DNA of 64,000 nt, taken from NCBI GenBank assembly GCA_907165135.1, contig OU015566.1:12090001-12154000 (forward strand), read 5' to 3'. Numbering within the stretch: position 1 is the first letter of the stretch; each line of letters opens with the position of its first letter. The DNA comes from Oikopleura dioica (lineage: Eukaryota; Animalia; Chordata). The position numbers and the translations under genes are program-made. Shown here one piece after another: positions 27,831-63,979 of the stretch. Under the pieces are notes generated by a model. It ran no database searches. It saw only the letters and a list, made by a program, of their open reading frames with translations, and had not been told where the DNA came from.

Positions 27831-29650
27831 ATGATGCGAGTACAACATGCTCTCCGGCATGTTCGAGCCAAATCTATCCGTGTTGGATGCGCTTCTGGAT
27901 TTTGGGGTGATTCGACCTTGTCCACCGGTCAGCTTGTTGAAAAGGGAGATCTTGACTATCTTGTGTACGATTATCTCTCTGAGATCACCATGTCTCTCAT
28001 GGTCGGCGCCCAAATGAGACGACCAGAGATGGGCTACGCTCCTGATGTCATCAGAGACATCAAGCCTCATTTCGGAGCCCTTCAGGAGCGCGGCACTAAG
28101 TTGGTTTGCAATGCTGGAGGCATCAACCCCGTTGGTTGTGCTGAGGCCATGTCCAAAGCAGCGGAAGCTGCTGGTTTCAAGGTAGATAATGATCGCTTTT
28201 TAATAATTCACAATCTAGGACCTCAAAATTGCCGCTATCGGAGGCGATCAAGTTGAACAGCCAGGCTACATGACTTCCAATGCGTATTTTGGATGTGAAT
28301 CGGTTGTTGAAGCTCTCAATCGAGGTGCTGATATGGTCTTGACGGGTCGTCTTGCTGATTCTGCATTGATCCTTGGCCCCGCCATGTACGAATTCGGCTG
28401 GAAGATGAACGACTGGGACAAGCTTGCTGCAGGATCTGCTGCTGGTCATATTGTGGAGTGTGGAGCTCAGTGCACTGGTGGAAACCACACTGATTGGCAA
28501 AACGTTGCTGACTCTTGGTGGAATGTTGGCTTCCCCATTGCCATTATCGATGAGTCTGGTTCATTCGAAATTACCAAACCAGAAGGTACCGGGGGCAAGG
28601 TCTCTTGGGCCACTGTTGCTGAGCAGTTGACCTATGAAGTTGGCAATCCCGCTGGTTACATCCTCCCCGATGTTGTTGCCAATCTATCTGAAGCCGTCAT
28701 TGAAGAAGTTGGCGAAAATCGAGTCAAGGTTACCGGAATCACTGGTGTTGCGCCTACCGACACACTTAAACTTGGCCGAACAAAGTTCGATGGTTTCCGA
28801 TCTATCCTTCCTGTCTACATCGGCGGCCGAGATTGCCAAGAAAAAGCCCTCGCAACTGGCCGAGCATTGATCAAGCGAATCGAGGATGAGCTCGAAAAGC
28901 GCGATCTTGGAAAATTCACTCGAGTAACAATGGCAGTCACTCCTCCTCTCGGAGTAAAAACGCCAGAATGCACCCTTCGAGTTGTCGTGCGCCACCCAGA
29001 TCGTGAAGCTCTCAAGTTTTTCGGTCTGGAGATCGCTACTGCTGGAACTTCGATGGCTCCTGGTCTTCAAGCCGTGTCTGGTGGGCGACCAAAGCCTACT
29101 CCCTGTCTTTCTTATCAGTCAGTTTTGATACCTAAAAGCGATGTCACGCCGACCATCACACTTGGCGACGAAGAAATTGAAGTTCCTAACTTTTCTGACT
29201 ACGAGGCAACGAAAGAAATCCCGCAACCAAACGCTCAAGAAGACGCTGTCAGAACGGGCCCATTTACTTATTCAGTCCATGACCTCGCATATACAAGATC
29301 AGGAGATAAAGGCAATTCCTGCAATGTTTCTGTGATCGCTCGAAAGCCAGAATATCTTCCATACTTGAGGTTAGCCTAGAAAATTTTGTCGAGGCTATCA
29401 TATTTTTAGACGACATTTGACCGAAGACAGAATCTTCGAATTCTTCCAAGACAAGTTTGCGGAAGGAGCTACCGCAGAGCTTGTCACCAGATATGACTGG
29501 CCCGGACTCAACGCTCTCAACTTCGTCTTGGAAGAGTCACTTGCTGGTGGTGGAATTGCTTCCGATGCTAATGATCCACAAGGAAAAGCTTATGGATCCC
29601 TTCTGACTCTGATGGAAATCCCCGATCTCCCTCACATAACTGAACTTTAA
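27831..29650 (+). CDS. Acyclic terpene utilisation AtuA-family (DUF1446) protein
   Basis: IRVGCASGFWGDS, DYLVYDYLSEITM, NAGGINP, GRLADSAL, AAGHIVECGAQCTGGN and C-terminal RSGDKGNSCNV...DPQGKAYG. Two short GT-AG introns. Confidence 0.9.
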
Positions 29651-44586: not shown

Positions 44587-44989
44587 AACTTCACATGACA
44601 TTTTTCCACCATAACAAGTACCCTTTCTCATTCCTATCTTCCGCTGTACTTCTTCGCAATGAATCATGATTTCTTTCAATTTATTTAAACCAAAATTTTT
44701 CTATAGTTCAACTATTTTTCTATCCGCTATTTATAAATATATTTTTATATGAAAAAGATAACTCTATCTTCTGATTAAGACTCTTTTATCGCTTTTGAAT
44801 AGTCTTAATTTCTCCTGACTCTTTTTTTAAAAATGCTAAATTTAGACGAGAGAAAATTATGTCATGACAACATCTGACAAAATCGGCCAAAAAAGTGGTT
44901 TGAGTAGGGCCATCAAGGTGCTTATATTATGCGTTGTGTGGTATGCGAGCTCGTCGGCGTCCAACGTCATTAACAAAATCGTTTTGAAC

Positions 44990-45404
44990 TGTAGTGCTTT
45001 TATAAATGCAATAACAAATGTTGGAGACTAAGGGCGTTTTGTTGTGGGGGTAGTTAAAACAACTACGGAGCGTTTATTGTACTGACAGAACAGTCAGTAG
45101 GAGCAGGATTCGTTTTTCAGAAATTTGTGGTATTGATGTTGGCGCAGATTGGTACAGACTGGCACAGAGTAAAAAGGGTGCTTCTTTTTATAGCATTTCG
45201 TTCCGGGTGGCGGGTTTTCATCGGGCCTCACGAGCCGAGGGTGGCGGTGGAATCGGGTGAGTGCGCTTTACGACAGAAGGTGGTGGCGGATTCAGAGGGT
45301 GGTAGTGGTTTTGAAATGCGCGCGCTAATGGCTTTATGGCCATTGCGCGCGGCGGAAATCAACTTTGTTGCAAAAGTCATACTTGCATATATTAATCCAC
45401 TACA
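44990..45404 (-). repeat. 3' LTR
   Basis: Identical to 52870-53284 on line-by-line comparison. Minus-strand TATAAAAA (45192-45185) and AATAAA (45078-45073). Confidence 0.97.
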
Positions 45405-45406
45405 AA

Positions 45407-45418
45407 TCCTTCCCTCCT
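45407..45418 (-). promoter_or_regulatory. Polypurine tract of the LTR element
   Basis: Minus strand AGGAGGGAAGGA, 2 nt before the 3' LTR start. Confidence 0.85.
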
Positions 45419-45444
45419 AGAATTTATGACTTTTGCACCTGATT

Positions 45445-46539
45445 TTAACCAAAGAGCAGATCACGCCAGTTGTCATCTAGCATTTCAACCATGTTGCCGC
45501 TGTCAGTGTTGCTGGAAGATTGAGCTGAAGGAAAGGGGTCGTCAAGAGGCGGATCGCCAGGTGTTTGGTTGCCAAGGACGTCCGGGGCGGAGCTCATCGG
45601 GCCATAACTCAGCGCTGGAACTGACGTTGGAGGTTGGGCTGGTGCCTTAGCCGTCCGGGAGGTATCAGTTGTCAACTGAGTCTGAGTGACCATGTCTTTT
45701 TTGGAGCTAGTAGGGAACGTCGTCGGTGGCAGTTGCTGTGGATCCGGGGCTCTTGGATGTTCCATCATCGACAGAGACGTTGTGGCTGGAGTTGCCGGCG
45801 CGATCGTCACCAGGGGTCTGGGCAGGTGCTCAGTCATATCATTCTGTGGGGCAGCTGGCATCTCAGGCTGGTTGCGCTCGGTTGTCATCGTTGATTGCGC
45901 TTGGTCATCTAAGTCGTTATAGAAGGCTTCATCTTGTTGGTTCTGGGACTGGGTAGGCAGGGCGAACTTAGCGAGTAAGTCTGACAGGAAAGTCTCCAAT
46001 AGGGAATTAGCTTCTTTAAGTTCAATTTGAAAGTTTGGATAGTTAGCTAATTCCCGCCAGACTTTTCGACGTGCTAAAAAGTGTTCTTCGTAGTTGTTGA
46101 TGACCACATTCGCAAACTGCGGGATCGGCCTAAATGACTTTAGTAATTCAACCACAGCTGCCGTCTTTGTCTGCCAGCGAAGAAGGGACTCCCCTTTCAT
46201 GCACTCGTTTTTCCAACAGTCTATAATACTTTCGAATGCTTCTTCAGGAAATGCCCGATTTTGCAGTCGATCAAGGGCTCGTTCTTTTGCATACCGGATA
46301 CTTCCTGTTAAATCGAGTAGTCGAGACCATTTCGGGTCAAGGAAGATTGTTGGCACGTGAATTCCAAAGATTGACGGTAGTACATACCGTTGGAACATTA
46401 CCTTGCCACTGTCATTCATTCGGAAGAAGTGGCAGTCAAGGTTGGTAGTTGCTCCCTGGGAAGGCATTTTCAATTTCTTGAACTTGCGTTTGGCTTGTGT
46501 ATTTTGATACTGGGCCAGGGAGTCTCGTTTCAAAGCCAT
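45445..46539 (-). CDS. Accessory ORF of the LTR element (364 aa, soluble, not env-like)
   Basis: Intact ORF with a basic KRKFKKLK stretch, a predicted helical core, a Pro/Thr/Ser/Gln-rich half and an acidic-hydrophobic end (EMLDDNWRDLLFG). No signal peptide or transmembrane segment visible. Confidence 0.8.
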   Translation of the reverse strand: MALKRDSLAQYQNTQAKRKFKKLKMPSQGATTNLDCHFFRMNDSGKVMFQRYVLPSIFGIHVPTIFLDPKWSRLLDLTGSIRYAKERALDRLQNRAFPEEAFESIIDCWKNECMKGESLLRWQTKTAAVVELLKSFRPIPQFANVVINNYEEHFLARRKVWRELANYPNFQIELKEANSLLETFLSDLLAKFALPTQSQNQQDEAFYNDLDDQAQSTMTTERNQPEMPAAPQNDMTEHLPRPLVTIAPATPATTSLSMMEHPRAPDPQQLPPTTFPTSSKKDMVTQTQLTTDTSRTAKAPAQPPTSVPALSYGPMSSAPDVLGNQTPGDPPLDDPFPSAQSSSNTDSGNMVEMLDDNWRDLLFG

Positions 46540-46585
46540 GCGCGGTGCTTATTGGCCGCCCCAAGGCGAACTGTGCCGCGCCTAA

Positions 46586-47172
46586 TTATTTTCCCACGGT
46601 TGATATTTGGTTTGTGTGTATATTTGATGCTTCTTCTGTGAGCATTTGAGTTTTGTCACCAGTTCTACTCCACACGAGCAGAATCGGATGCTTAGATGCT
46701 TCTTCTGTGAGCATTTGAATCGCAGTCATCAATTCTTCTCCACACGAGAAGACTCGTTTGATGATAATTTTTGGTGCTTCTTCTGTGAGCATTTGAATCG
46801 TAGTCATCAATTCTTCTCCACACGAGAAGACTCGTTTGATGATAATTTTGGTGCATCTTCTGTGAGCATTTGAATCGCAGTCATCAATTCTTCTCCACAC
46901 GAGAAGACTCGTTTGATGATAAGCTGTCGAGTACATAATTTTTGAGTTTTTATTGCTTCTTTTGTGAGCATTCGAGTCTCTTTCATCAGTTCTTCTCCAC
47001 ACGAGCTGAACCAGATGACACTCAGGGTTCGAGTACTAAGCTGCATGCGAAGCGGGCAATTTTCGCTTCTACTGTAGTCGTGTAACGTGCTTCTGAAGGT
47101 AAATCTGAACCCGTTTGGGCCCATTGGGAGCAGACTCCAACAGTTGTAGAGGTCAACGCGTCCAGTAGCCAT
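46586..47172 (-). CDS. Candidate repeat-protein accessory ORF (~195 aa if one A is restored)
   Basis: MATGRVDLYNCWSLLPMGPNGFRFTF... followed by SCGEELMTAIQMLTEEAPKIIIKRVF repeats. ORFs 46807-47244 and 46586-47002 join if the A4 run in the 77-bp unit is A5, as in the neighbouring 78-bp unit. Confidence 0.45.
46629..47006. repeat. Five-copy tandem repeat with a ~51-bp conserved core
   Basis: Core gcttcttctgtgagcatttgaatcgcagtcatcaattcttctccacacgag starts at 46629, 46698, 46776, 46853 and 46955 (periods 69, 78, 77, 102). Confidence 0.93.
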
Positions 47173-47679
47173 CAAATTGTGCTGTGCGGGCTGTGGCAGG
47201 GTTTGATAAGCAGGTTCCTTCTGCTGACTAAGCTGACTTACCACGGATATTTTTCATGAGCTGATGCGGGCTCATGGCACTTGAACTTGAACGTTGCTAT
47301 AGCGGGTGGTGATGGACTTCCAGCATACAGTCGAAATTCTTATCGAAGGTCCAAGAAGATAATCGTTTTACATTCCTAGGGTACGGTGTTGGTTAACTCA
47401 GTGCATCGTTGTCCCGGCGGTAATAACTTCTCCCCCTTAGTAAACGAATTCTAGAGATCGATCAGGGATCTAGAATGGAACGGGTGCGTGGACATATCAA
47501 GAGCAAGATATCTCATTCCACGCTATTTTTGAAAATAGTTTTAGTGCTTTTGAGATGGCGCTAAATTAAGATTTTCAAAAATGTAAACTTAGAGCAAGAA
47601 CAAGCTCTCTCTTCACAGTGGGCTCATGAGAGTGCAAACCAACAATGCATCTCTCCCCTTCCCCTCCTCTTTTAGGAAC

Positions 47680-49902
47680 TTATTTTCGGGGTCGTAATCT
47701 TTTTGACCAATTTGCAGGATCATTTTTGAGGGGCGCAACAGGATCATTATTTTCATTTTTCGGATCCTCTTTAGTTTCTGCATTCTTTTTTGACGCAGTT
47801 GAGCGGGAAATTTTTATTTGGGTGTCTTCCTTGATTTCTTTTGAGACACAATTGAGTTTTTTATCGCGAATGGATGATTGATCGTTTTCGTCATTGATCG
47901 AGACGAATTTTGTTGAGTCGCCGATCTTATTTTTTAGAGGTCGGATCAGGCTTATGTGTCGGCGATACTCGCGTTGTGTGAGTGAACATTTTAGAATGTA
48001 AGAATCTTTTGAGATTCTTTTATGAACATAAAATGGGCCGCTCCAGTTTGTACCTAATTTTCCGTCAAAAAGATTTGGTTTCCAGACTAGCACTTGGGTA
48101 CCAAGTTCAAGAACTGGGCAATTATTTTTATCTTTTCGGAGGAGTTTTTGGTACCTGTGTACCTGGAACGCTTGGATCGCAGGGTGCAGTTGTTTAATAT
48201 AACCATTGAGAGCTTTGATAAATGGTTCTTTGGCACCATCATTTGATGTTCCAATTTTGTAAGGAACATGAAAAGGCCTACCGTAGAGAGCTTCATTACT
48301 TGAGAGCCCGTCTAGTGTTGCTTTTGGTAGGTTATTGAGATAGTATTTAGCTTGCTCCCATTTTTGTGACCAATTGCGATCATTTGCATTCAATTGTTTG
48401 AGTTGAATGTGAATCTCGCGATGGATTCTTTCAACTTTCCCATTTGAACAGGATCGGTATGCAGTTGTTGTAACGTGGCGGATTTGGAATCGCTCGAAAA
48501 TTTGCTTGCAAAGCGGTCCAAATTCACGCCCGTTGTCAGTAACAACAACCTCGGTGATCCCGTGTCTGAGAACAAGAGTGAGGGTCGCTTGCGCGACAGT
48601 TTTGTCACTTTTTGTTCCCAATGGTAAACCGTCTAGAAACCCGGTAAGCGAGTCGCAACAAGTCAGCAGATACCTTTTGTTTGATGAGTCAACTCTTCCA
48701 TAGTCGACAAGGTCGAGAAAAGTTTTCTCAAAAGGAACTGACTCGAAGTTGCGTCGCTCGATCATTGATGGTTTGAGCTTTTTGATCGGTTTAAATTGAA
48801 TGCAAGTGGGGCAAGAGCTCGTTACGGCTCTAAGTTTCATTTGGATATTACTTATGAAAAATTTTTGGCACATTTGGTTTAATTGCTGCGCACCAGCATG
48901 TCCCGTTATACAGTGCAGGTACTGTATGAATTCATTTGCAAGTTGGTCTGGGATAACAAGTTTATTTTTGGAGAACAAGATTCCGTCTTTGAGCGAGAAT
49001 CTTGATTTTTTGTATTTGTCCACTTTAATGCGCTTATTTTTGGTGAGGTTGCACTCTTTTTGCAACTCCCTCATTTTTGTTTTTGTTATTTTCTCGGAAC
49101 CGAAAGAGAAAATAACCTCATTTTCATCATTTTTGATGAGATGGAACATACAGACGCGTTCTGGAAGGAGCTCAAAGTTCACCGAATCGTCCTCTAAGTC
49201 GGAGCTTTTTGATCTTGGAAGGCGAGAAAAGTAATCCGCACTTGCCATGATCGGGCTGTTTCCCGGCTTGTGGATGATTGTAAAATCAAACTGCTGGAGA
49301 TAGCAGTGGATGTTGGTGAGTTTGATATCCAAGTTGGACTGTTGTTGTTCCTTGAAAAGAAAGAGCAGGCTTTTGTGGTCTACAACACAATCGAACTCTG
49401 TATTGAGGAGGTAAAACTCGAAATATTTGATTCCCCAAGTTAACGCAAAGAGTTCCTTTACCCGCATGCTTCTTTTCAGATCAGGACCCGTGAGAGCTTT
49501 TGAAAAATAACCAATAACAACTAGTTTTTCATTTTGATATTGGTAGAGGGTCCCGCCAACACTTCGCCCTGAGCTGTCGGTCACGAGAAGAAGCTTCGCG
49601 CCGAGTTTAAAATGGCCAAGTGTTGGTTTTTCTTTGAGCTTTTGATTCATGTTTTCGAAAGCCTGCTGGTGTTTACTCGTCCAGTTGAATTCTTTTTTTA
49701 GGCTTGTAAGCTCATACAAAGGCGCAAGAATTATGGATGCGTCTTTGACATATTTTGCATTGAAAGTGACCATTCCCAAGTAGCGTTTAAGTTCTTTTCT
49801 AGACGTTGGTACAGCAATTTTCTGTATTGCTGCAATGTGCTTATCTGATGGTTGGATTCCCTGTCTCGAAATTCTGTGCCCAAGGAAATCTGTTTCACGC
49901 AT
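47680..49902 (-). CDS. pol: Pol, 3' part: RT thumb/connection, RNase H, integrase
   Basis: DFLGHRIS, VTDSSGRSVGG, ELFALTWGIKYF, VDHKSL (RNase H); HCITGH...CPTC (HHCC); FLDLVD...TDNGREF...NGKVERIHREI (DDE); WSGPF. No chromodomain seen. Confidence 0.95.
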   Translation of the reverse strand: MRETDFLGHRISRQGIQPSDKHIAAIQKIAVPTSRKELKRYLGMVTFNAKYVKDASIILAPLYELTSLKKEFNWTSKHQQAFENMNQKLKEKPTLGHFKLGAKLLLVTDSSGRSVGGTLYQYQNEKLVVIGYFSKALTGPDLKRSMRVKELFALTWGIKYFEFYLLNTEFDCVVDHKSLLFLFKEQQQSNLDIKLTNIHCYLQQFDFTIIHKPGNSPIMASADYFSRLPRSKSSDLEDDSVNFELLPERVCMFHLIKNDENEVIFSFGSEKITKTKMRELQKECNLTKNKRIKVDKYKKSRFSLKDGILFSKNKLVIPDQLANEFIQYLHCITGHAGAQQLNQMCQKFFISNIQMKLRAVTSSCPTCIQFKPIKKLKPSMIERRNFESVPFEKTFLDLVDYGRVDSSNKRYLLTCCDSLTGFLDGLPLGTKSDKTVAQATLTLVLRHGITEVVVTDNGREFGPLCKQIFERFQIRHVTTTAYRSCSNGKVERIHREIHIQLKQLNANDRNWSQKWEQAKYYLNNLPKATLDGLSSNEALYGRPFHVPYKIGTSNDGAKEPFIKALNGYIKQLHPAIQAFQVHRYQKLLRKDKNNCPVLELGTQVLVWKPNLFDGKLGTNWSGPFYVHKRISKDSYILKCSLTQREYRRHISLIRPLKNKIGDSTKFVSINDENDQSSIRDKKLNCVSKEIKEDTQIKISRSTASKKNAETKEDPKNENNDPVAPLKNDPANWSKRLRPRK

Positions 49903-51196
49903 GCATAAATTGCATTTTTTTTGCGCTTAGTAGAAGTCCGTGATTTCGGCACTGTTTGAAAATAAATTCGAGTGTTTTGAGGTGATTTTCGAAAGAATTG
50001 TCAATAACAATCAAATCATCCAAATAAATGATGATCGAGGGATGGTTCATGAGTTTTGACATAATTCTTGAAAACGCACTCGGAGCTGTTGCTGTTCCAT
50101 AAAGCATTCTGTTTGCTTGGTAGTGCTTGTTACCAAAGCTGAAGGCAAGTTTATGCGAGTCAGATGAAGCGCACTGTACTTGCCAGTAGCCACGGTGGTA
50201 ATCAAGACTACTTATGTAACATGCATCTCCTTTTGTGAGTTTTTCACCTATTCTAGTCATTACTGATAGCATGTGGGGAAGTGGGAAACGATCTAGCTTA
50301 AGAAGCTTGTTTAACCCACGAGCATCAAGCGAAATTCGAATTGTTTTATCGGGCTTTTTGAGAATAATGAGGGGGATGTTAAAATCAGACTGGGTCTCCT
50401 CTATGATTCCAAGATTTTTCCAGTTGTTGATTTCGGTTTCAACTTGGTCACGCAAGTGAACTGGGATCGGTCTCGGAGGTTGGTGGCTTGACAGAGATTC
50501 GTCATGCGTTGGAAGCGCGAATCTGAATCCATGTAACTTGCCAAGGTCATCTGGTGACATAGAAAACGCAAGTTTATATTTTTCGGTTAGACCCTTGAGT
50601 GAAAGTTTTTCATTTCGAGAAGCATCCCCGTAATTCCCAATTTCAGGTATGAAATTCGCCCTTTTCGCTTGTGCTTCCCGCACTGATTGAAAGTTCTCAA
50701 GCGATTTTGATTCAAGGTCAGAGTTTAGGTCAACCTCGATAATTGCTGAGACTTTCGTTGATTGTTTCGAGAAGATTGATGGGTTAATTGTTTTAACCCG
50801 ATGTTTTTCAAGGGTGATAAAGTTTTCACCATCGCAAAATGAGACGTTTTTAAGGACGTCAAGTCCTAGAATTATTGGACAGGATAGGTTCGAAACAACC
50901 AAAGGTAAGGGGTCTAGGGTAAATTTACCATCATCAGAAGGGACCGTGATTTTGACCGGTGAGCACATTACTCTTGGGCGCACTATTTCATCATTTGCGA
51001 CCAAGAGTTCAACATCAGAACTTCTTGTTTTACGAACAAAAGGGAGGGTGTTTTTAATGCAAGTTCGGGTGCAGCCGCTGTCGATCAAGGCTGGATACTG
51101 AAAGTTTTCGACAATGACGTTGATGAATTTTAGGTCTGAAGAAGCGGATCTATAGTTTGGACAAAAGTTGAAAATGGCATGTTTATGGCCGTCTAG
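49895..51196 (-). CDS. pol: Pol, 5' part: aspartic protease and RT, in frame with gag after one UGA
   Basis: ALIDSGCTRT (protease), ILGLDVL, RISLDARGLN, LDYHRGYWQ, YGTATAPSAF, IYLDDL. The frame is open from 51196, immediately after the gag stop. Confidence 0.93.
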   Translation of the reverse strand, partial: LDGHKHAIFNFCPNYRSASSDLKFINVIVENFQYPALIDSGCTRTCIKNTLPFVRKTRSSDVELLVANDEIVRPRVMCSPVKITVPSDDGKFTLDPLPLVVSNLSCPIILGLDVLKNVSFCDGENFITLEKHRVKTINPSIFSKQSTKVSAIIEVDLNSDLESKSLENFQSVREAQAKRANFIPEIGNYGDASRNEKLSLKGLTEKYKLAFSMSPDDLGKLHGFRFALPTHDESLSSHQPPRPIPVHLRDQVETEINNWKNLGIIEETQSDFNIPLIILKKPDKTIRISLDARGLNKLLKLDRFPLPHMLSVMTRIGEKLTKGDACYISSLDYHRGYWQVQCASSDSHKLAFSFGNKHYQANRMLYGTATAPSAFSRIMSKLMNHPSIIIYLDDLIVIDNSFENHLKTLEFIFKQCRNHGLLLSAKKMQFMHA

Positions 51197-52537
51197 TCAC
51201 TCCTGTTTTTTCACGTAGTCCAAAACATCTGCTGGAACTTTGTCAGAGTGAATATATTTGCAGTTTTCTGCATATTTGCATCTGTTGTACTTTGTGTACG
51301 AAAAACAGTGCCCTTTCAGTTTTTCAATGTCGATTTTCGACCTTTTTGATCGTTTGCTGCCCGATTTGGAGTGTGTGCTTTGGGAAGAGTCAAGTTTTTG
51401 GTAGAGCTTGTTAACGAGTTCGCGGAAACGAGCTTTTTCATCATCTTCAGCTTGGATACTGAAGTTGATCTCCTTTTTTGGAATGGAGGCCTCAATTTCC
51501 GCTGCTCGCTTCGCTATGTTCTCAAGAGTGAGCTGTGACTTTTCTCGCATCAAAAGTTCTTTCATTTTCTGATACTGGCTTTCGCAAAATCTTTCTATAA
51601 TTATAGAACGATCATTTTCATTGAGGTGAGTGAGGTCGTAGCCCTGTTTATAGTATGATGTGATCTTTGAGAGGGCTAGTCCGAAACTGTCACTACCTCT
51701 TTGGTAATCTTTAAATTGCTGTTTAAAGAACTCTTTATCCTTCCCAAGCATACTTGTTAATCGATCTTTAAATCTGCCCCAGTCTTGCATGTCTTCCGAC
51801 TCCAGAGATTGGATTATATGAGATCCTTCGGACTCATTGAGCAACGATGTTAGTGCAACGGTTATAATTTCGCTGCTAGAAAGATTTGAACATCGTGCAT
51901 AGATTTCAAGATTTTTAAGCCAAGCTGGGATCGGGATCGATGCGTCATAACGTGGGGGTTTTACTTTTAGATTTGAAGAACGCGAAATTTTTGGTTCAAA
52001 CTGTTGCTTTGGAATGTGTGTCGATTTCGATTCTTTCTTGAAACGCGGCACATCTTTTGATTCCGGCTTTTCAGTTTTCACCTTTTGTTTTCGTGGCTTC
52101 GGAGCTTCCTGGCCGTCTTGAATGACCGTTTCATCAGCTGAATCAGCTGACGAATCATTTGAAAGCTCTGAGCCTGAAACAGATTCAGTTTCTATTTTGA
52201 GCGATGTGATCAAAGCATCTAGATTTTCTACATTTCGGGACGCCAAAATCTTTTCTGTGTCATTTTTATGACGAGCTTGCGCGAATTTTTGGTTTTGGCA
52301 GTCCTCTTGGTACTGAGGAAAATATCTTACGAATTGGCCATCAGCACTTTTCTCAAAGACATATTTCCTATTTTTGACAAAGAAATCTTTATCCAAAGCT
52401 AGAATATTGTGGCAAATTGATTCTTTATCGCTTATGGGGATTTTTGGTGGGTAAGTTTTTCCCTCGAGGTTATCGTAAATAACTAGTAGTTCCCCTTTGT
52501 TAAGGTCTTGTACGTGCTTGAAATAGAGTTCAGACAT
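51197..52537 (-). CDS. gag: Gag (446 aa) with C-terminal CCCH zinc finger
   Basis: First ORF after the 5' leader. Capsid-like region KPPRYD..IPAWLKNLE...WGRFKDRL; terminal C-x8-C-x5-C-x3-H (CFSYTKYNRCKYAENCKYIH). Confidence 0.88.
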   Translation of the reverse strand: MSELYFKHVQDLNKGELLVIYDNLEGKTYPPKIPISDKESICHNILALDKDFFVKNRKYVFEKSADGQFVRYFPQYQEDCQNQKFAQARHKNDTEKILASRNVENLDALITSLKIETESVSGSELSNDSSADSADETVIQDGQEAPKPRKQKVKTEKPESKDVPRFKKESKSTHIPKQQFEPKISRSSNLKVKPPRYDASIPIPAWLKNLEIYARCSNLSSSEIITVALTSLLNESEGSHIIQSLESEDMQDWGRFKDRLTSMLGKDKEFFKQQFKDYQRGSDSFGLALSKITSYYKQGYDLTHLNENDRSIIIERFCESQYQKMKELLMREKSQLTLENIAKRAAEIEASIPKKEINFSIQAEDDEKARFRELVNKLYQKLDSSQSTHSKSGSKRSKRSKIDIEKLKGHCFSYTKYNRCKYAENCKYIHSDKVPADVLDYVKKQE

Positions 52538-52852
52538 GATTTCAAATAGAATGAGTAGAAATTTGGTAAGAGCTCTTGGTTTGGTGCCTTTTTCTTAAAG
52601 GTCCGATCCTATAAGTCCTAAAAGCTTTCCTGTCGGTGGCGCTTCTTATGGAAGTCACTCCGCTCAGTGGGACTCGCTCTGGACTATTGAAAATATCTAG
52701 GGACCTTTGAACCGGGTACTAACCTTTGTTGGCGTTTTCTTTTTTTCGGAGATCGTAGGCAGCAGCTCTTTTCGTATCGTTGTCGGTAAAGTAGGCTTCG
52801 GGGGTCTTCGAACTTTAAGCGATGGACTCTAGTCTTAAAGTTCCTCGCCGTT

Positions 52853-52864
52853 TTTCAGTCACCA
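52853..52864 (-). promoter_or_regulatory. Candidate primer-binding site
   Basis: Minus strand TGGTGACTGAAA begins 5 nt inside the 5' LTR. The TGG is complementary to a tRNA CCA end. Confidence 0.6.
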
Positions 52865-52869
52865 AAATT

Positions 52870-53284
52870 TGTAGTGCTTTTATAAATGCAATAACAAATG
52901 TTGGAGACTAAGGGCGTTTTGTTGTGGGGGTAGTTAAAACAACTACGGAGCGTTTATTGTACTGACAGAACAGTCAGTAGGAGCAGGATTCGTTTTTCAG
53001 AAATTTGTGGTATTGATGTTGGCGCAGATTGGTACAGACTGGCACAGAGTAAAAAGGGTGCTTCTTTTTATAGCATTTCGTTCCGGGTGGCGGGTTTTCA
53101 TCGGGCCTCACGAGCCGAGGGTGGCGGTGGAATCGGGTGAGTGCGCTTTACGACAGAAGGTGGTGGCGGATTCAGAGGGTGGTAGTGGTTTTGAAATGCG
53201 CGCGCTAATGGCTTTATGGCCATTGCGCGCGGCGGAAATCAACTTTGTTGCAAAAGTCATACTTGCATATATTAATCCACTACA
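52870..53284 (-). repeat. 5' LTR
   Basis: Identical to 44990-45404. TATA at 53072-53065 and AATAAA at 52958-52953 on the minus strand. Confidence 0.97.
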
Positions 53285-55027
53285 GAACGATTTTCCTTTT
53301 GCCGTTACCGTCTCCCTGGCGCAGTATATTACCACTCTAGTCTTGCTAGTCCCTCTTGTCAGGGCGTGGCGGCTACCAACGGTTTCGTTTTCTAAGCACG
53401 TAAGTCGCATCGTTTTCGACCTCAAGATGATCTGATTTTAAGACGCTGAAATGGACGATTCTTCCCTTATCATTCGGGAAGTTTTTCTCCCTCGCAGCGT
53501 CCCACTTCTCCATTTCGAAAGTACCAGTCTCGTTCGCACACACCATCAAAGCGTCGATGCCAATTTTTGTCTTGCTCTTAGGCAGAATCATCTGGAAGGA
53601 AAGACAACCATTGAAGATTTACCTCTCTGTGATCCCCATCATCATTGGAATAGGTACACTAAACACATACTATTCATCGATCTTCAATTAATTCTAATCT
53701 CTAGCTATGGCAACGATATCAGAGCTGAATTTTAATATGATCGGAACAATCGCCGCCTTTGCCTCAACAATCGGCTTCGCCCTGCAAAACTTATACACAA
53801 AAAAGAGCCTGCGCGACCTCAACATCCATCAACACGTTTTGCTTCAACACCTCACTTTCTACGGGTTTTTCATGCTTCTTACTCTTTGGCTATTTACTGA
53901 CATGCCAAAAATCATGGACGGTAGGGCACGAGTTATGATTTTTATGGAATTAATCGTTTTTAGCTGACCACAAAAACTTGAGTGTCCACTCAATTATCAC
54001 TCTTCTATTTATTTCCGGAGTTTGCTCACTGCTTCAAAATCTCACTGCATTTTCTGTAATGGCTCTGGTCTCAACTGTCAGGTACTTATTGCTGATCGAA
54101 GCGCTAGAAATCATTATTTTTCAAGTTATTCTGTGGCAAGTGCAACTAAACGAGTCGTCGTTATTGCTGTCAGCTTGCTGACGCTGAAGAATCCTGTCAA
54201 CGGTAATTTTCAATTAGTTAGTCACCGGATAGAGTATAACGTTCAATTAGCATTCAACGTTGGTGGAATGGTGATGGCCTGCTGCGGCGTTTTTCTGTAC
54301 AATCGCGTGAAAACAAATCTACGAAAGATCCCTATTTTACCGACCTTTTCTTCGCCTTCCACGCGAACCGCCTGATATTCCATTCTCCGCTATTTTACTA
54401 TTCAATAAAGTCTTCAATTTATCTTCTCTTCCTCCAGGAGCCAAAAATTACAAGGAGCTGAACAATCCCTAAATGAATATGAATATTTATTTGTATAAAA
54501 ACTTTCGCATAAAGAGTTCTTACGTTTTTCATACTCTATTTTAGTAAATTCTACTTTTAGTAGTACTTTTAACCTCGTCATATATTTCGCAAATGATTGC
54601 GATGGAACCTACATGGTTACGAACTAATAATTAATTTTTATGTTTAAATAACCCGACGAGTAGGTTTCAATTTGCTCATTCTACCACGCCGATGTCGGCT
54701 ACTTAGTTTATATTCCGCCTTATTTTACAATCAAAGATCTCAAAGTACGGCTCTCGCTAAAATACTCTTTCAAAAATACCCTCTTCGCTTTTTCTGTATC
54801 TGTAGTTTTATACCTTCTAGACCAACATAATTCAACGGGCTGTGAACTGATCAAATGGTGATTTCAACTTTACACAAGCAAAAAAACTTTAAAAAATATA
54901 TTATCTGAATAATTTCTAATTATCATGTTTTGAGTTTTGATTATCTCTAGAATGTTGTTGGGGATGTTTTGGATCCAAGCGTCTGGCGAGGAAATCATGT
55001 CAGATTTACGAAACCAGACGGACAACA

Positions 55028-56346: not shown

Positions 56347-57247
56347 ATGGATATGAGCCATTTACTCAGTATTATGCTGGAGACTGAAATGAGCAACGTT
56401 GACCTCAACGCTGATAAATCCGCCACTGCCGCCGGAGAAGAAGTCAAACACCCACTTCAGAACACGTAATGAATTTTTTAAACACACCTTTTGTAGAAGC
56501 ATCAGGAGCAGGGAATAATTTATGCTTTAGCTGGTCACTTTGGTTTTTCAAAAATGAAAAGGGCAACCAATGGAAGGACAATCTCCGTCTTGTCACTTCA
56601 TTCAGCACTGTTGAAGATTTCTGGGCGATCTATAATCATATCCAGGTTGGCAGTGATCGTCCAGTGATTATTGAATCGAACAAGAGTATTTTAAGCTTTC
56701 CTCAAAACTGCCAACAGGATGCGATTACATGCTTTTCAAACAAGGAATCGAGCCAATGTGGGAAGATGTTCAAAACCGAGAAGGCGGTCGTTGGCTGCTC
56801 ACTACTGTAAGTCACTCTTAGATTTCTCAAATCTGATGGCTTTGATAGGACAAGAAAAAGCGCGCTCAGGACTTAGATCGAATTTGGTTGGAGACTCTTC
56901 TTTGCTTGATCGGCGAAGCATTCGATGATGCCAGTGAGGATGTAAGAGGCAATTGAATTTGAGTTGTCTTTAATTTTCATTAGATCTGCGGAGCTTGCGT
57001 CCAAATTCGTCAGAAAGCCGACAAAGTGGCGATCTGGACCACCAATGCGCACCACAAAGATCGAGTCATGTCGATCGGCCGAAAATTTCAGACGAGAATC
57101 AAGCTCGCCCCAGAATCGCTTTTCTACCAAAAACATACAGACACAGCCAACTCTGCCAGCAAACAGGGCTCGAACAAGTCAAGTAAGCACCTCCTTCACT
57201 TATTATTTTTCTTACCATCAAAACTAGAATACGAATACATCATCTAA
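56347..57247 (+). CDS. EIF4E: Cap-binding translation initiation factor eIF4E (class I-like)
   Basis: HPLQNTWSLWFF, TVEDFWAIYNHI, DYMLFKQGIEPMWED, GGRW, WLETLLCLIGEAFD, DKVAIWT. Confidence 0.95.
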
Positions 57248-58231
57248 TTCGCCACGTCCGATCAACCAACGAAAGCTGTAACTCTTTCCCAGCCATGGCC
57301 AAGGAACGGGCTTGTTCCAGTTTCAAACTTTTGACTTTTATTGATTTCTCCCTTGGATCGATTGGAAATTTTCCAATGTTCGCGACTTAAATTCTCGTCG
57401 ATTTTAATTTATATCTGTCTAAATCGCACGAAAAAGAGACTAAGACTATCAAGAAACAAGCCCGTCATAAAGGTATTACTATTTCAACTTTGGCCAACAG
57501 AAAAATGCTTTTGTTTCTATAAACTTGCCTTTCTTACTTTTCTAAACAAACAACAAATATAAAACATGTTACTACCCATCCCCATCGTCCGAGAAAAACC
57601 TAAATCTGTTTGACTTTGAACAAGTTTGAAGAAGCACAACCGTTTGAAAATTCTCAATCCCGCAACGGACACCGTTATCCGTCACAATTCTTCCTTTATC
57701 AAACAAAAAAAAAAACTACAAAAACATTCAAACAAAAACATAATCGCCCCCGATCTACGAAAAACCCCATTCTCTTTCAATGTATCGCCTATTTTTTCAA
57801 TAAAAAAATATAAAATATTCAATTTTCAAAATGCAAATCTCTGTTTTTGCATCGTTCTCCAGGACTCGTTTCAAATTTCTTTCTTTGTTTCTTTTTCAAA
57901 GTATTTATCTATATGTCGTGATCCAAATTTTTATACAGCTACCTTTTGATTAAAAACGAGCGCTCATAAGAAATCATTCGAAAGTTGCTACAGTATTTTT
58001 GGACCATTTGGAGCTTGTATGATGTGTGATCCAAATTCAATCGTTTTCAAGATCGGCACTTCGCGCCCTTTACCCATAACAGTATTTTTATTCTATTTCC
58101 CGAGTCAGGGACTTTTCGTTTATTCATTTAAAACTATTTCTATTTCTCTTGAAATGAATTCGCAATTGAACTAGAACCTTCGAAGATTGTCGCTAAAGAT
58201 TTATCGTTGTCAACTTAGAATGGCTCTTTGA

Positions 58232-59814
<1,583 letters not shown>

Positions 59815-60563
59815 TTTATCCCTAGAATATCCCAATCAACTTCGTTACTTATAATCTCGGTATTTTATTTAACGCGAATCTGATTTCTTTCAGACGGCAA
59901 CTTACTCTATCAAAAACAACTAAACGACGATTTCCCCCTTGAAAATAATCTTGCCATTTAAATTAATTGAAAGTACGCCAGGGGAAATTTTTCACTCATC
60001 AAATTCTTCAAAGTTTTCCATTTTGATTTATCCTTTTTATGACTGCTCTGTATCAATGAAAAGTTTCCCATTATTCGCTCGAGATACGTGCATTCCATTT
60101 ATTTCTTCTTGTCAGACTAAATTTATCGACGACTTCGCCAAATAATTATTAAAAAAGTAAAGACATGTCTCTTAATGAAAAGAAGCTCCTAGAAGTTAGA
60201 TATGGCCGATTTCAGAGAAATTGAGAGCTTTTGAAAATATGACGTCACATGTAACTTCTTCAATGTTTGAAGTAACCTATCACAAGTATGAAGTATTTTA
60301 TTACTGTATCTAACTGTTACTATCCCTTCAATCCCGTACCCCTCTTCCTTATCATTGATCTCATCATTTGGAAAAAATACTTTTTCAAGTTCAGTGTTAA
60401 CATTGTCCTATTCATTCTTTCATCCTTCAAAAATCCCCATTCACCATCTTTGTAACATTTATTCTTTGAGACGACCCCTTGTTTTATGTTCAAAATTTCA
60501 AAAAATATTCAACAGAATAAAATTCATAAAAATGAGCAAAACTAAAAAAGCACCTCTTTCAGA

Positions 60564-61125
60564 ATGCGCCCTATTTTGATAGGGACCATTCTTCAGTTGG
60601 TCACATCGTCAGATCAAGAGAATGACTGCGCATCTTTAGGTTTTGACGAGCAAGGTAATTTGTGAAACGAGTGGATGATTTTTCTATTGCTTGTTTAGTT
60701 TTGGAATGCAATACTTGCAAAGAACTTTCGGATTTTGGACTCGATGAAATCAAGGAAGATTGCTTGAGGTGTTGCAAAAAGTCAGATGAACAAATTGTGA
60801 CTTACAAGGTTTGTACTCCTTTACTTATAATAAGTTTTCTAACTGAATTTATAGTCTGCGCAATTTGAAGTTTGCTCCTGAAAATTGGGCCGATTTCCCC
60901 AAGTATCGGCCTTCATTGATAACCACTCGAAAAATTTCAAAAATCTCAAAGTTAAATACACCAAAGGAGCTCCTCCAAGGATAAAACTCTATGGTCAGTT
61001 GGGGGATATTTTTCAAGCTCAAACAATTTCTAGGAGAGGGCGACTTTGTTGAGGAAGAAGTCAATATCGAAAATTGGGATACAGACACGATAGTACAATT
61101 TTTAGACGAGAAGCTGACGCACTAA
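60564..61125 (+). CDS. SELENOF: Selenoprotein F (Sep15) with in-frame UGA (Sec)
   Basis: Four exons give a signal peptide, CNTC...CLRCC, FEVCS-U-KLGRFPQVSAF (TGA at 60879-60881), VKYTKGAPPRIKL and EEVNIENWDTDTIVQFLDEKL. Not in the ORF track because of the UGA. Confidence 0.93.
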
Positions 61126-61380
61126 TTATGACCTAATCCTGCCTTCTAGAGTTTTCTATTCTTCTATCTTGGTGAAACAAAATGTAGTTGTCCTTCCTCT
61201 TCAAAAATTTTAATTCTGCTCATGATTCTACGCTGAAAGTTTTCTCTGGGAAATGTTTTTCGTATCAGCGTTTTTCATTTTTACTTGGGGAAGTTAAGAG
61301 AAACAGCTTCTTCGAATTTGTGAGTAGTTTTCCAAGGAAAACGTGAAAAAACTTCTGTGCAATAATTAAATCCTGAAATG

Positions 61381-61438
61381 ATCTCTATGACGGCTTGTTC
61401 GCCAAACCGAAATTTCGGAGCTTCTAGCCTGAAGAGGA
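61381..61438 (+). promoter_or_regulatory. SECIS element (type II) of SELENOF
   Basis: ATGA (61387) and TGA (61430) form the kink-turn core, GGCT/AGCC closes helix II, unpaired AAA at 61404-61406, apical mini-stem CCGAAA/TTTCGG, lower helix TCTCT/AGAGG. Confidence 0.85.
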
Positions 61439-61561
61439 CTTTCCTCTCGATCATGGACGGCCTTGGAGTACTACTCACCTTTTCCCAGGGCAAACGTTTT
61501 TTGCAAAAATCGGTTCTTAAATTCTTGTGATGAAGATTTTCTTTGACAGCTTTTTGTTAGA

Positions 61562-63979
61562 ATGCTATCTCGGGCGGCGCGTAGAAAATTGGCCTTTACC
61601 GCTGCCACTGAGCAGCAGGCGAAGCGAGCCCTTGTGCAGGTCTTTGTCGATGGCAAGCCTGTCAAAGTCGAAGCCGGCACCACTGTTCTTCGAGCCTGCG
61701 AAGCTGCTGGTGTCCAGATTCCCCGATTCTGCTACCACGAGCGTCTCTCCATCGCTGGCAACTGCCGAATGTGCCTAGTCGAAGTCGAAAAGATGCCCAA
61801 GGCCGTCGCTTCCTGCGCCTTCCCAGTTATGAAGGGAATGTCTATTTTGACCAACAGTGAGAAATCTCGACGATCGCGAGAAGCTGTCATGGAGTTTCTC
61901 TTGGCTAACCACCCTCTTGATTGCCCAATTTGCGATCAGGGTGGTGAGTGCGATCTTCAGGATCAGGCCATGACTCACGGAAGTGATCGATCTCGATTCT
62001 GGGAGGGAAAACGAGCCGTCGAAGATAAGGTTTAAAAATCTAAAGTATTTGATGCTTACTTTTCTTCCTAGGATATCGGGCCTCTTGTCAAAACTGTCAT
62101 GACTCGATGCATCCAGTGTACTAGATGCGTCCGATTCTGCCAGGAAATCGCTGGTATTGATGAGCTCGGAACAACTGGTCGGGGAAACGATCTCCAGATC
62201 GGTACATACGTCGAAAAGGCTTTAAGCACTGAGTTGTCTGGAAACCTTATTGATGTCTGCCCAGTTGGTGCCCTTACCAGCAAGCCATATGCTTTTAGTG
62301 CTCGCCCATGGGAAACCCGAAAGGTACTAGCTATTATGTGAGCAAATTCAATCATATTCTCAGACTGATTCCGTCGATGTCATGGATGCCGTTGGTACCA
62401 ATATCGTCGTTTCTTCCCGAGCTGGCGATCTTCTTCGAATCATCCCAAGACTCAACGAGGAAGTCAATGAAGAATGGCTCGCTGACAAGGTACAAACCGA
62501 TAGAATTATTGAAAGTTATTAATGTTACAGGGTCGATTCTCTTATGACGGACTCAAGCGACAGCGACTCACCCAGCCCATGGCTCGAGGTGAAAACGGCA
62601 AACTCACCAAGGTCGATTGGCAGGATGCTCTCACCGTTGCTTCCGATGCTATTGCTGATGCTGGTGAGAACATTGCCGTTGTCGTTGGTCCATTCGCCGA
62701 TGTCGAGACCATGTGCCTCGCCAAGGATCTCGCTAACAAGGCCGGCTCCGAGATGGTTACCACTGAGCAGAGCTTTATCGCTAATGGTGATCTTCGATCT
62801 GACTACACTTTCAACTCGACTATTGCTGGCATCGAAGAGGCTGACCGAGTCATCATCATTGGTAATGATTATTGTACTGAAGCACATTATGGCGTATTTT
62901 AGGCTGCAACCCTCGATTTGAAGCTCCACTTATCAACGCCCGAATCCGAAAATCCTGGCTCCACAAGGAAACCGAAGTTGACGTCATTGGTTCTGAGCTG
63001 AACCTCTCCTACACTCACCAGTACCACGGAAATGACCCACAAAGTAAATCCCTCTACTCAACTTTTTCTTTAATTTACTAGTCATCAATGACATCGCTAA
63101 CGGCACCCACCCAATCTGCGAAGAACTCGCTGAATGCGAGCGACCCATGGTCATCCTTGGTTCTTCCGTCTTTGAGCGAGCCGATGGCTCTGCTATCCAC
63201 CAGTCTGTCAAGAAAATGTGCGAATCCTTGAACACCCCCGAAGGCTGGAACCCATTCAATATTATGCACAAGTCTGCTTCTACTGTTGGCGCTCTCGATC
63301 TTGGCTACAAGACTGGTGTTGAACACATCAAGGGCCGAAAGCCTGATGTTATCATCAACCTCGGCGCTGATGAGGGTCTCATTACTCGAGATGATGTAAT
63401 GATCTTTCTGTTATACAGCGGCTGAATTAGTTTTAGGTTTCTTCCACTGGCAAGATCATTTACATCGGACACAACGGTGACGCTGGTGCTTCCTCTGCTG
63501 ACGTCATCCTCCCAGCTGCCGCTTACACCGAGAAGAACGGTACCTACGTTAACACTGAAGGCCGAGTCCAGGTCACTCGAACCGCTATTACTCCCCCTGG
63601 AGCTGCCCGAGAAGACTGGAAGATCGTCCGAGTCCTCTCTGAGCTTAGCAACCTTACTGTAAGTGGATCGACCAGCGATTCACTATAAATTTATCTTAAG
63701 CTTCCATACGACACCCTCAAAGAAGTCCGATCCCGAGTGCGAGAAGTTGCTCCTCATTTAGTTAAATTCGATTCTCTTGAACAAAGCGCGATTTCGGTAA
63801 GTGATCATCAAAATCCTCTCCTCAAATTTGCTTAGATTCCAGCTGAACCCAGCACAATGGCAAACGAACCACTTGTCGCCAACCAGACCCAGCTCTCTGA
63901 GTACTATATCACAGATTCCATCACCAGAAGTTCAAAAGTTATGGCTAAGTGCGTCAAGTACGCCAGAGCACAGGAGTAA
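61562..63979 (+). CDS. NDUFS1: NADH:ubiquinone oxidoreductase 75-kDa subunit
   Basis: Mitochondrial presequence, [86 protein letters not shown]. Confidence 0.97.

Follow-up and report, generated by a model that had tools for sequence, protein, structure and literature searches.

Comparison with described elements

Tor elements are the textbook example of gypsy-like elements in a chordate that carry an env gene driven by an internal promoter. We analysed a stretch of 64,000 nucleotides from Oikopleura dioica (GenBank assembly GCA_907165135.1, contig OU015566.1, positions 12,090,001–12,154,000; hereafter, the window), which contains a Tor-like Ty3/gypsy retroelement with long terminal repeats (LTRs) and, in the position of env, another open reading frame (ORF), the third, referred to here as ORF3 (45445–46539; like all features of the element, on the minus strand). 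The described Tor elements display near-identical LTRs, target-site duplications of 4–5 bp, and polymorphic insertions; their third gene encodes an Env that is membrane-anchored, glycosylated, and cleaved by furin and that has seven conserved cysteines (Henriet et al., 2015; PMC4402516). In Tor3b and Tor4b, transcription of env is driven by an internal promoter rather than by the LTR; the spacer between pol and env of Tor4b holds this promoter, Penv (Henriet et al., 2015; PMC4402516). A small number of Tor elements 'without env' are also mentioned, and the main text of that report is silent on any other ORF in them (Henriet et al., 2015; PMC4402516).

The element in the window shares the following features with Tor3b and Tor4b: a larvacean host, the organization of a Ty3/gypsy-type LTR element, near-identical LTRs, a target-site duplication in the range of 4–5 bp, and a third gene located after pol. 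As in Tor4b, pol and the third gene are separated by a spacer, here of 1140 nt. Unlike the Env of Tor3b and Tor4b, however, ORF3 is a soluble, helical protein, which lacks a membrane anchor, a furin site, and conserved cysteines. We conclude that ORF3 is a real gene and represents a new family of accessory genes in a known kind of element. Stated in general terms, it is quite probable that ORF3 is a real accessory gene, conserved and with expression of its own, whose product is soluble and not an envelope protein. The more detailed explanation, according to which a conserved accessory gene has taken the position of env in a young Tor-like element, has its own mRNA, and encodes an intracellular adaptor, is favoured here with moderate confidence.

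In foamy viruses, the accessory gene tas is located 3' of the structural genes, possesses its own promoter, and encodes a protein in which a basic nuclear signal is combined with a structured core and an acidic region at the C-terminus. ORF3 resembles Tas in gene position, in a probable promoter of its own, and in the presence of a basic stretch, a core predicted to be structured, and an acidic C-terminal tail. The two proteins differ in that they share no sequence or fold similarity: Tas-like matches to ORF3 were absent from Pfam, PDB sequences, PDB folds, and viral folds. Also, foamy viruses retain env. Extra conserved non-envelope ORFs of unknown function occur between pol and the 3' LTR in Ty3/gypsy elements of plants, that is, in a different kingdom from that of the ORF3 element. 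No sequence relation between these plant ORFs and ORF3 is known to us, nor has a separate promoter been described, to our knowledge, for any of them. A sister lineage of the Tor elements that keeps the slot after pol, and probably its promoter, but fills this slot with a conserved, soluble protein of unrecognised fold would make the slot a swappable cargo position.

ORF3 is a conserved non-envelope gene

ORF3 is an intact ORF of 364 amino acids located between pol and the 3' LTR. It begins with ATG and is preceded by an in-frame stop codon four codons upstream. A preliminary description of this ORF had suggested that it does not encode an envelope protein, and all envelope features surveyed were indeed missing. 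Namely, neither a signal peptide, as judged from hydropathy and N-terminal composition, nor a transmembrane helix was found: the best 19-residue Kyte–Doolittle window reaches 1.07, and the N-terminal 30 residues have a basic, hydrophilic character. The protein contains two N-x-S/T sites and three cysteines, none of which is conserved. No furin-type site (R-x-K/R-R) was found in ORF3, and no viral fusion protein was present among the top fold matches listed for the PDB and viral libraries. The conclusion that ORF3 is not an envelope gene is therefore well supported.

Since the claim of a new family rests on the absence of relatives, an exhaustive HMMER search was chosen. It covered 1.84 billion representative proteins and was run with no length filter, so that fusions and fragments would have appeared. 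Exactly four relatives of ORF3 were revealed (220–307 amino acids; E-values 7.5e-24 to 1.3e-12). They align to residues ~25–260 of ORF3 and are unnamed proteins from marine metagenomes, encoded on contigs of 1–8 kb. One of the relative clusters comprises 13 members with ten distinct full-length variants, which are ~6% apart; one variant was present on 14 contigs. The conserved part of the family corresponds to residues 26–195 of ORF3 (45955–46464). In this region, pairwise identities are 25–44% and 16 columns, many of them aromatic, are invariant; the tails that follow could not be aligned.

In the same search, ORF3 did not match any named host protein, whatever the organism. Pfam contains no family for ORF3 or for any of its relatives, and PDB sequences gave no match to either ORF3 alone or the family profile. 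A word-based protein search with ORF3 returned no match, and the same search with the family alignment returned one already-known member only. Look-up of the exact ORF3 sequence found no record. With five clusters among the 1.84 billion representatives, the family is very small; it is unnamed, represented in marine samples only, and included in no annotation resource. The possibility that ORF3 is a duplicated gag domain was rejected by profile comparison (probability 0.1%).

With four independent relatives and E-values down to 7.5e-24, a chance origin of this ORF is excluded; moreover, an open frame of 364 codons is itself very improbable by chance. Position alone would favour the related interpretation of ORF3 as a decayed envelope remnant. 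Both versions are refuted by the relatives, the confidently predicted compact domain described below, and the lack of any envelope feature, and we assign them a negligible probability.

The base composition of ORF3 differs from that of the other genes of the element. The G+C content at third codon positions (GC3) is 0.51 in ORF3 and 0.47 in its domain alone, as compared with 0.39–0.42 in gag and pol. The codon use of ORF3 is also slightly closer than that of gag and pol to the host genes of the window. This composition is compatible with a separate origin of a cargo gene, without being proof of it. The same values speak for ORF3 as a passenger, i.e. a captured host or foreign gene without a role in the life cycle of the element. 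Much of the G+C excess, however, is due to the proline/alanine-rich tail. Besides the lack of any named host match, no paralogue of ORF3 was detected within the window, and the relatives found on short contigs, some of them many times over, have kept their full length. A passenger is, accordingly, regarded as very unlikely.

Predicted structure of the conserved domain

The helical domain of ~170 amino acids, which had been postulated earlier and could not be assigned to any recognised type, was recovered by structure prediction. The AlphaFold model of ORF3 is all-helical over residues ~45–190. In the full-length model, only this domain is predicted with confidence, and the tail displays a predicted local distance difference test (pLDDT) score of <50. 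The model of the domain only, which was built from 15 sequences, has a pLDDT of 76, a predicted template-modelling score (pTM) of 0.73, and seven helices. Structure searches with these models yielded no match at an E-value of 0.001 or better.

The top PDB fold matches of both models belong mostly to the Bcl-2 family and include BAX, MCL-1, Bcl-xL, sponge BHP2, and vaccinia A49. These matches are weak, with template-modelling (TM) scores of 0.32–0.43 and E-values of 0.3–3. In the viral fold library, the best match was to gammaherpesvirus BALF1 (probability 0.97; TM-score 0.44; E-value 0.15; root-mean-square deviation, rmsd, 5.1 Å over 166 columns).

These matches raise the question of whether the helical domain represents a Bcl-2-like fold that has diverged very far. 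In this case, the protein would influence cell death or innate signalling of the host, as is done by Bcl-2-like proteins in herpes-, pox-, and adenoviruses. Several observations agree with this reading. For both models, chains of the Bcl-2 family make up most of the top PDB matches, BALF1 is the one geometrically good match in the viral library, where entries for adenovirus E1B small T-antigen are also present, and the ORF3 domain agrees in size and helix count with Bcl-2-fold proteins such as BAX, MCL-1, BALF1, and vaccinia A49, being an all-helical bundle of ~150–170 residues. The quality of the matches, however, is poor: the best E-values are 0.15–0.3, TM-scores do not exceed 0.44, rmsd values are 5–8 Å, and the better model of the domain brought no gain. 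Unlike Bcl-2-fold proteins, ORF3 lacks BH motifs and a C-terminal membrane anchor, and none of the family members matched the Pfam Bcl-2 profile, which covers the BH motifs, at E-values up to 1. In addition, MCL-1 and Bcl-xL are very abundant in the PDB, which inflates their share among weak matches. The modelled similarity lies below the shared-fold threshold and may serve as a lead, though a weak one, rather than as an indication of membership; a Bcl-2-like function of ORF3 appears unlikely.

N- and C-terminal regions

The conserved domain of ORF3 is flanked by two regions of distinct composition, which had earlier been taken as signs of a nuclear transactivator. The basic stretch KRKFKKLK is present at residues 17–24 (46468–46491), but a basic head occurs in only three of the five family members. 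Met25 (46465–46467) aligns with the first residue of the two relatives that lack this head, so that the protein may begin there and lack the basic stretch. The tail (residues 196–364; 45448–45954) is predicted to be disordered. It consists of P, T, S, and Q by 45%, carries a net charge of –14, and terminates with DDNWRDLLF at residues 355–363. Acidic tails with net charges of –7 to –16 are characteristic of four of the five members, and the fifth has a short neutral tail. The terminal motif, although present in ORF3 as described, is not conserved in position among the family members. It is equally compatible with the patterns for acidic activation motifs, class 1a export signals, and Atg8 binding.

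One of these options would make ORF3 an adaptor of the Rev/Rex type, which shuttles and exports RNA; its head would bind RNA and mediate import, and its C-terminal hydrophobic signal would mediate export. The K/R-rich head and the agreement of the last residues with the class 1a pattern are in line with this role, and some Tor RNAs were reported to remain nuclear (PMC4402516). In the ORF3 family, however, export-signal patterns occur at the rate found in shuffled tails and are missing in two of the five members; a head is also missing in two of five. An unspliced element with an internal promoter would also have less need of an export factor. An export adaptor of this type is, in our opinion, quite improbable.

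Accessory genes of complex retroviruses often have a role in counter-defence. If this were also the case for ORF3, the protein would blunt small-RNA silencing or another kind of host restriction. The combination of a fast-evolving tail with a conserved core, which is common in proteins involved in host conflict, speaks for such a factor. Pfam, PDB sequence, and fold searches, however, gave no similarity to known suppressors or antagonists, and no specific pointer to this function was found in the sequence. We consider a counter-defence role to be an unlikely one.

Expression and possible role of ORF3

The non-coding spacer of 1140 nt between pol and ORF3 (46540–47679) is a candidate site for an internal promoter. 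It contains five tandem units of ~77 bp each (46620–47036), which are located 80–500 nt 5' of the ORF3 ATG. Each unit includes two conserved blocks, and these are kept even in the degenerate outer copies of the array. The RNA folding energy of the array is ordinary (z –0.9), and Rfam and tRNA scans gave no match within the window. Closer to the gene, GGGGCGG and CCAAT motifs abut 13–24 nt 5' of the ATG on the ORF3 strand (46551–46562), as noted in the preliminary description. This composite of a GC-box and a CCAAT motif occurs once in the window, as compared with 0.18 occurrences expected. In view of what is known from Tor4b, these features are read most economically as an internal promoter or enhancer within the spacer.

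One more observation concerns a 22-nt block, which is present in each of the repeat units and resembles the LTR around its TATA box (45177–45198), with the TATA itself replaced. The best unit shares 18 of 22 positions with the LTR, a value equalled in 4 of 500 shuffles and thus of marginal significance; the other units are weaker. The similarity could mean that factor-binding sites are common to the LTR and the internal promoter.

According to the explanation favoured here, ORF3 would be made from an mRNA of its own. We infer this mRNA from the published internal promoter in Tor3b and Tor4b; it would start in the spacer and end at the poly(A) signal of the 3' LTR (AATAAA at 45073–45078), the use of which is presumed and which would also end the genomic RNA. 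The protein would act inside the cell as an adaptor, with the helical domain holding a partner and the acidic tail recruiting host machinery. Among specific activities, we consider the most likely one to be transcriptional co-activation of the promoters of the element, in a layout comparable to that of herpesvirus VP16 or foamy-virus Tas, although the probability of this reading is low. The reading of ORF3 as a nuclear transactivator is a possible one and finds no support in conservation.

Several points weigh against this scheme. First, the GC-box and CCAAT motif are oddly close to the ATG for a promoter, and an mRNA whose start lies downstream of both motifs would be translated from Met25, with the basic stretch lost. 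An AG-containing site ~45 nt upstream makes a spliced mRNA possible. Second, the basic head and the acidic tail are not universal in the ORF3 family, and the frequency of acidic-hydrophobic, export-signal-like, and Atg8-binding-like patterns in the tails is about that of shuffled tails. Third, no DNA-binding fold resembling the ORF3 domain was found in the structure searches. The isoelectric point of the domain varies from 5.1 to 8.95 across the family and is not consistently basic, a range that does not suggest a nucleic-acid-binding core. Finally, this copy of the element may not make its own enzymes, because of a frameshift in pol (see below).

In a broader perspective, it is conceivable, though we would advance it only tentatively, that Tor-like larvacean elements have evolved an accessory gene in the style of complex retroviruses. 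Such a gene would represent a new family with its own promoter, would replace env, and would regulate either transcription of the element or host death or defence. If true, this would be the first regulator of its kind described in a chordate Ty3/gypsy lineage. ORF3 is a defined candidate for an element-encoded regulator.

Organization and affiliation of the element

The element comprises 8295 bp (44990–53284) and is present as a single copy within the window. Its 5' LTR (52870–53284) and 3' LTR (44990–45404) are each 415 bp long, 100% identical, and bounded by TG..CA ends; the LTR carries a TATAAAA box and an AATAAA signal. The target-site duplication, GTTC, was read directly on both flanks (53285–53288 on the 5' side and 44986–44989 on the 3' side). 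The element is, therefore, complete and recently inserted. On the minus strand, the order of features is gag, pol, the spacer, ORF3, and the 3' LTR, with 40 nt between the end of ORF3 and the LTR. A putative polypurine tract, assigned by its position, adjoins the 3' LTR (45407–45418). The TG..CA LTRs and short target duplication, the succession of gag and pol, and the location of the integrase after reverse transcriptase and RNase H are all as in Ty3/gypsy elements.

Each LTR also contains four CCRCCACC motifs, two of them overlapping, within ~100 nt 5' of the TATA box (45206–45289 and 53086–53169). There are 13 such motifs in the window versus 1.06 expected, and eight of these reside in the LTRs. 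They may be factor-binding sites.

The gag gene (51197–52537) is an intact ORF of 446 amino acids; no CCHC zinc knuckle was found in its product. The gag and pol genes are in one frame, with the gag stop codon between them, which suggests either read-through or separate initiation. The pol gene (47680–51166) encodes protease, reverse transcriptase, RNase H, and integrase. Pfam domains follow in the order RVT_1, RT_RNaseH, Integrase_H2C2, and rve, and the protease motif and the catalytic motifs are also present. In this copy, pol is divided between two frames by one frameshift and is otherwise uninterrupted. Relatives with a single ORF of 1052–1161 amino acids align across the bounds of pol using both frames. 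Given the identical LTRs, the frameshift either arose very recently by mutation or reflects an error in the assembly.

The Pol protein shares 72% identity with unnamed proteins from marine contigs. The closest named relatives are proteins of O. dioica, with only 53–60% identity. Other named matches (crab, fluke, skate, isopod, and others) do not exceed 32% identity, and those above 27% span about one fifth of the query. Since its only close named relatives are O. dioica proteins, the element is regarded as Tor-like, as judged from pol identity to these proteins.

Insertion site and neighbouring genes

The element is apparently inserted in antisense orientation into a coding exon of a gene for a transporter of the TPT family (sugar-phosphate/nucleotide-sugar transporters), which is located on the plus strand (44864–44989 and 53289–54375). 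The 42 codons that end exactly at the insertion match positions 2–26 of the TPT profile. The same frame is open for 48 codons directly after the target duplication, and later exons match profile positions 134–206 and 248–291. Disruption of a gene by a copy with identical LTRs agrees with the rare and hemizygous insertions that have been reported for Tor elements.

In the regions 1709–43711 and 56469–62035, host genes are densely packed and have very short introns. The genes identified in the window include those for kinesin, a CFAP65-like protein (with an exon of 1075 amino acids), IPP transferase, a DEAD-box helicase, scramblase, and M18 aminopeptidase, as well as an ODAD1-like protein, eIF4E, and a subunit similar to the 75-kDa subunit of NADH dehydrogenase. 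The CFAP65-like and ODAD1-like proteins are ciliary. The gene density, short introns, and ciliary genes fit a larvacean genome. Also, the region 28270–29379 on the plus strand strongly matches the family AtuA (acyclic terpene utilisation; E-value 1.4e-93). Members of this family are known mostly from bacteria and fungi, and the occurrence of one in a tunicate genome may make horizontal transfer worth a check.
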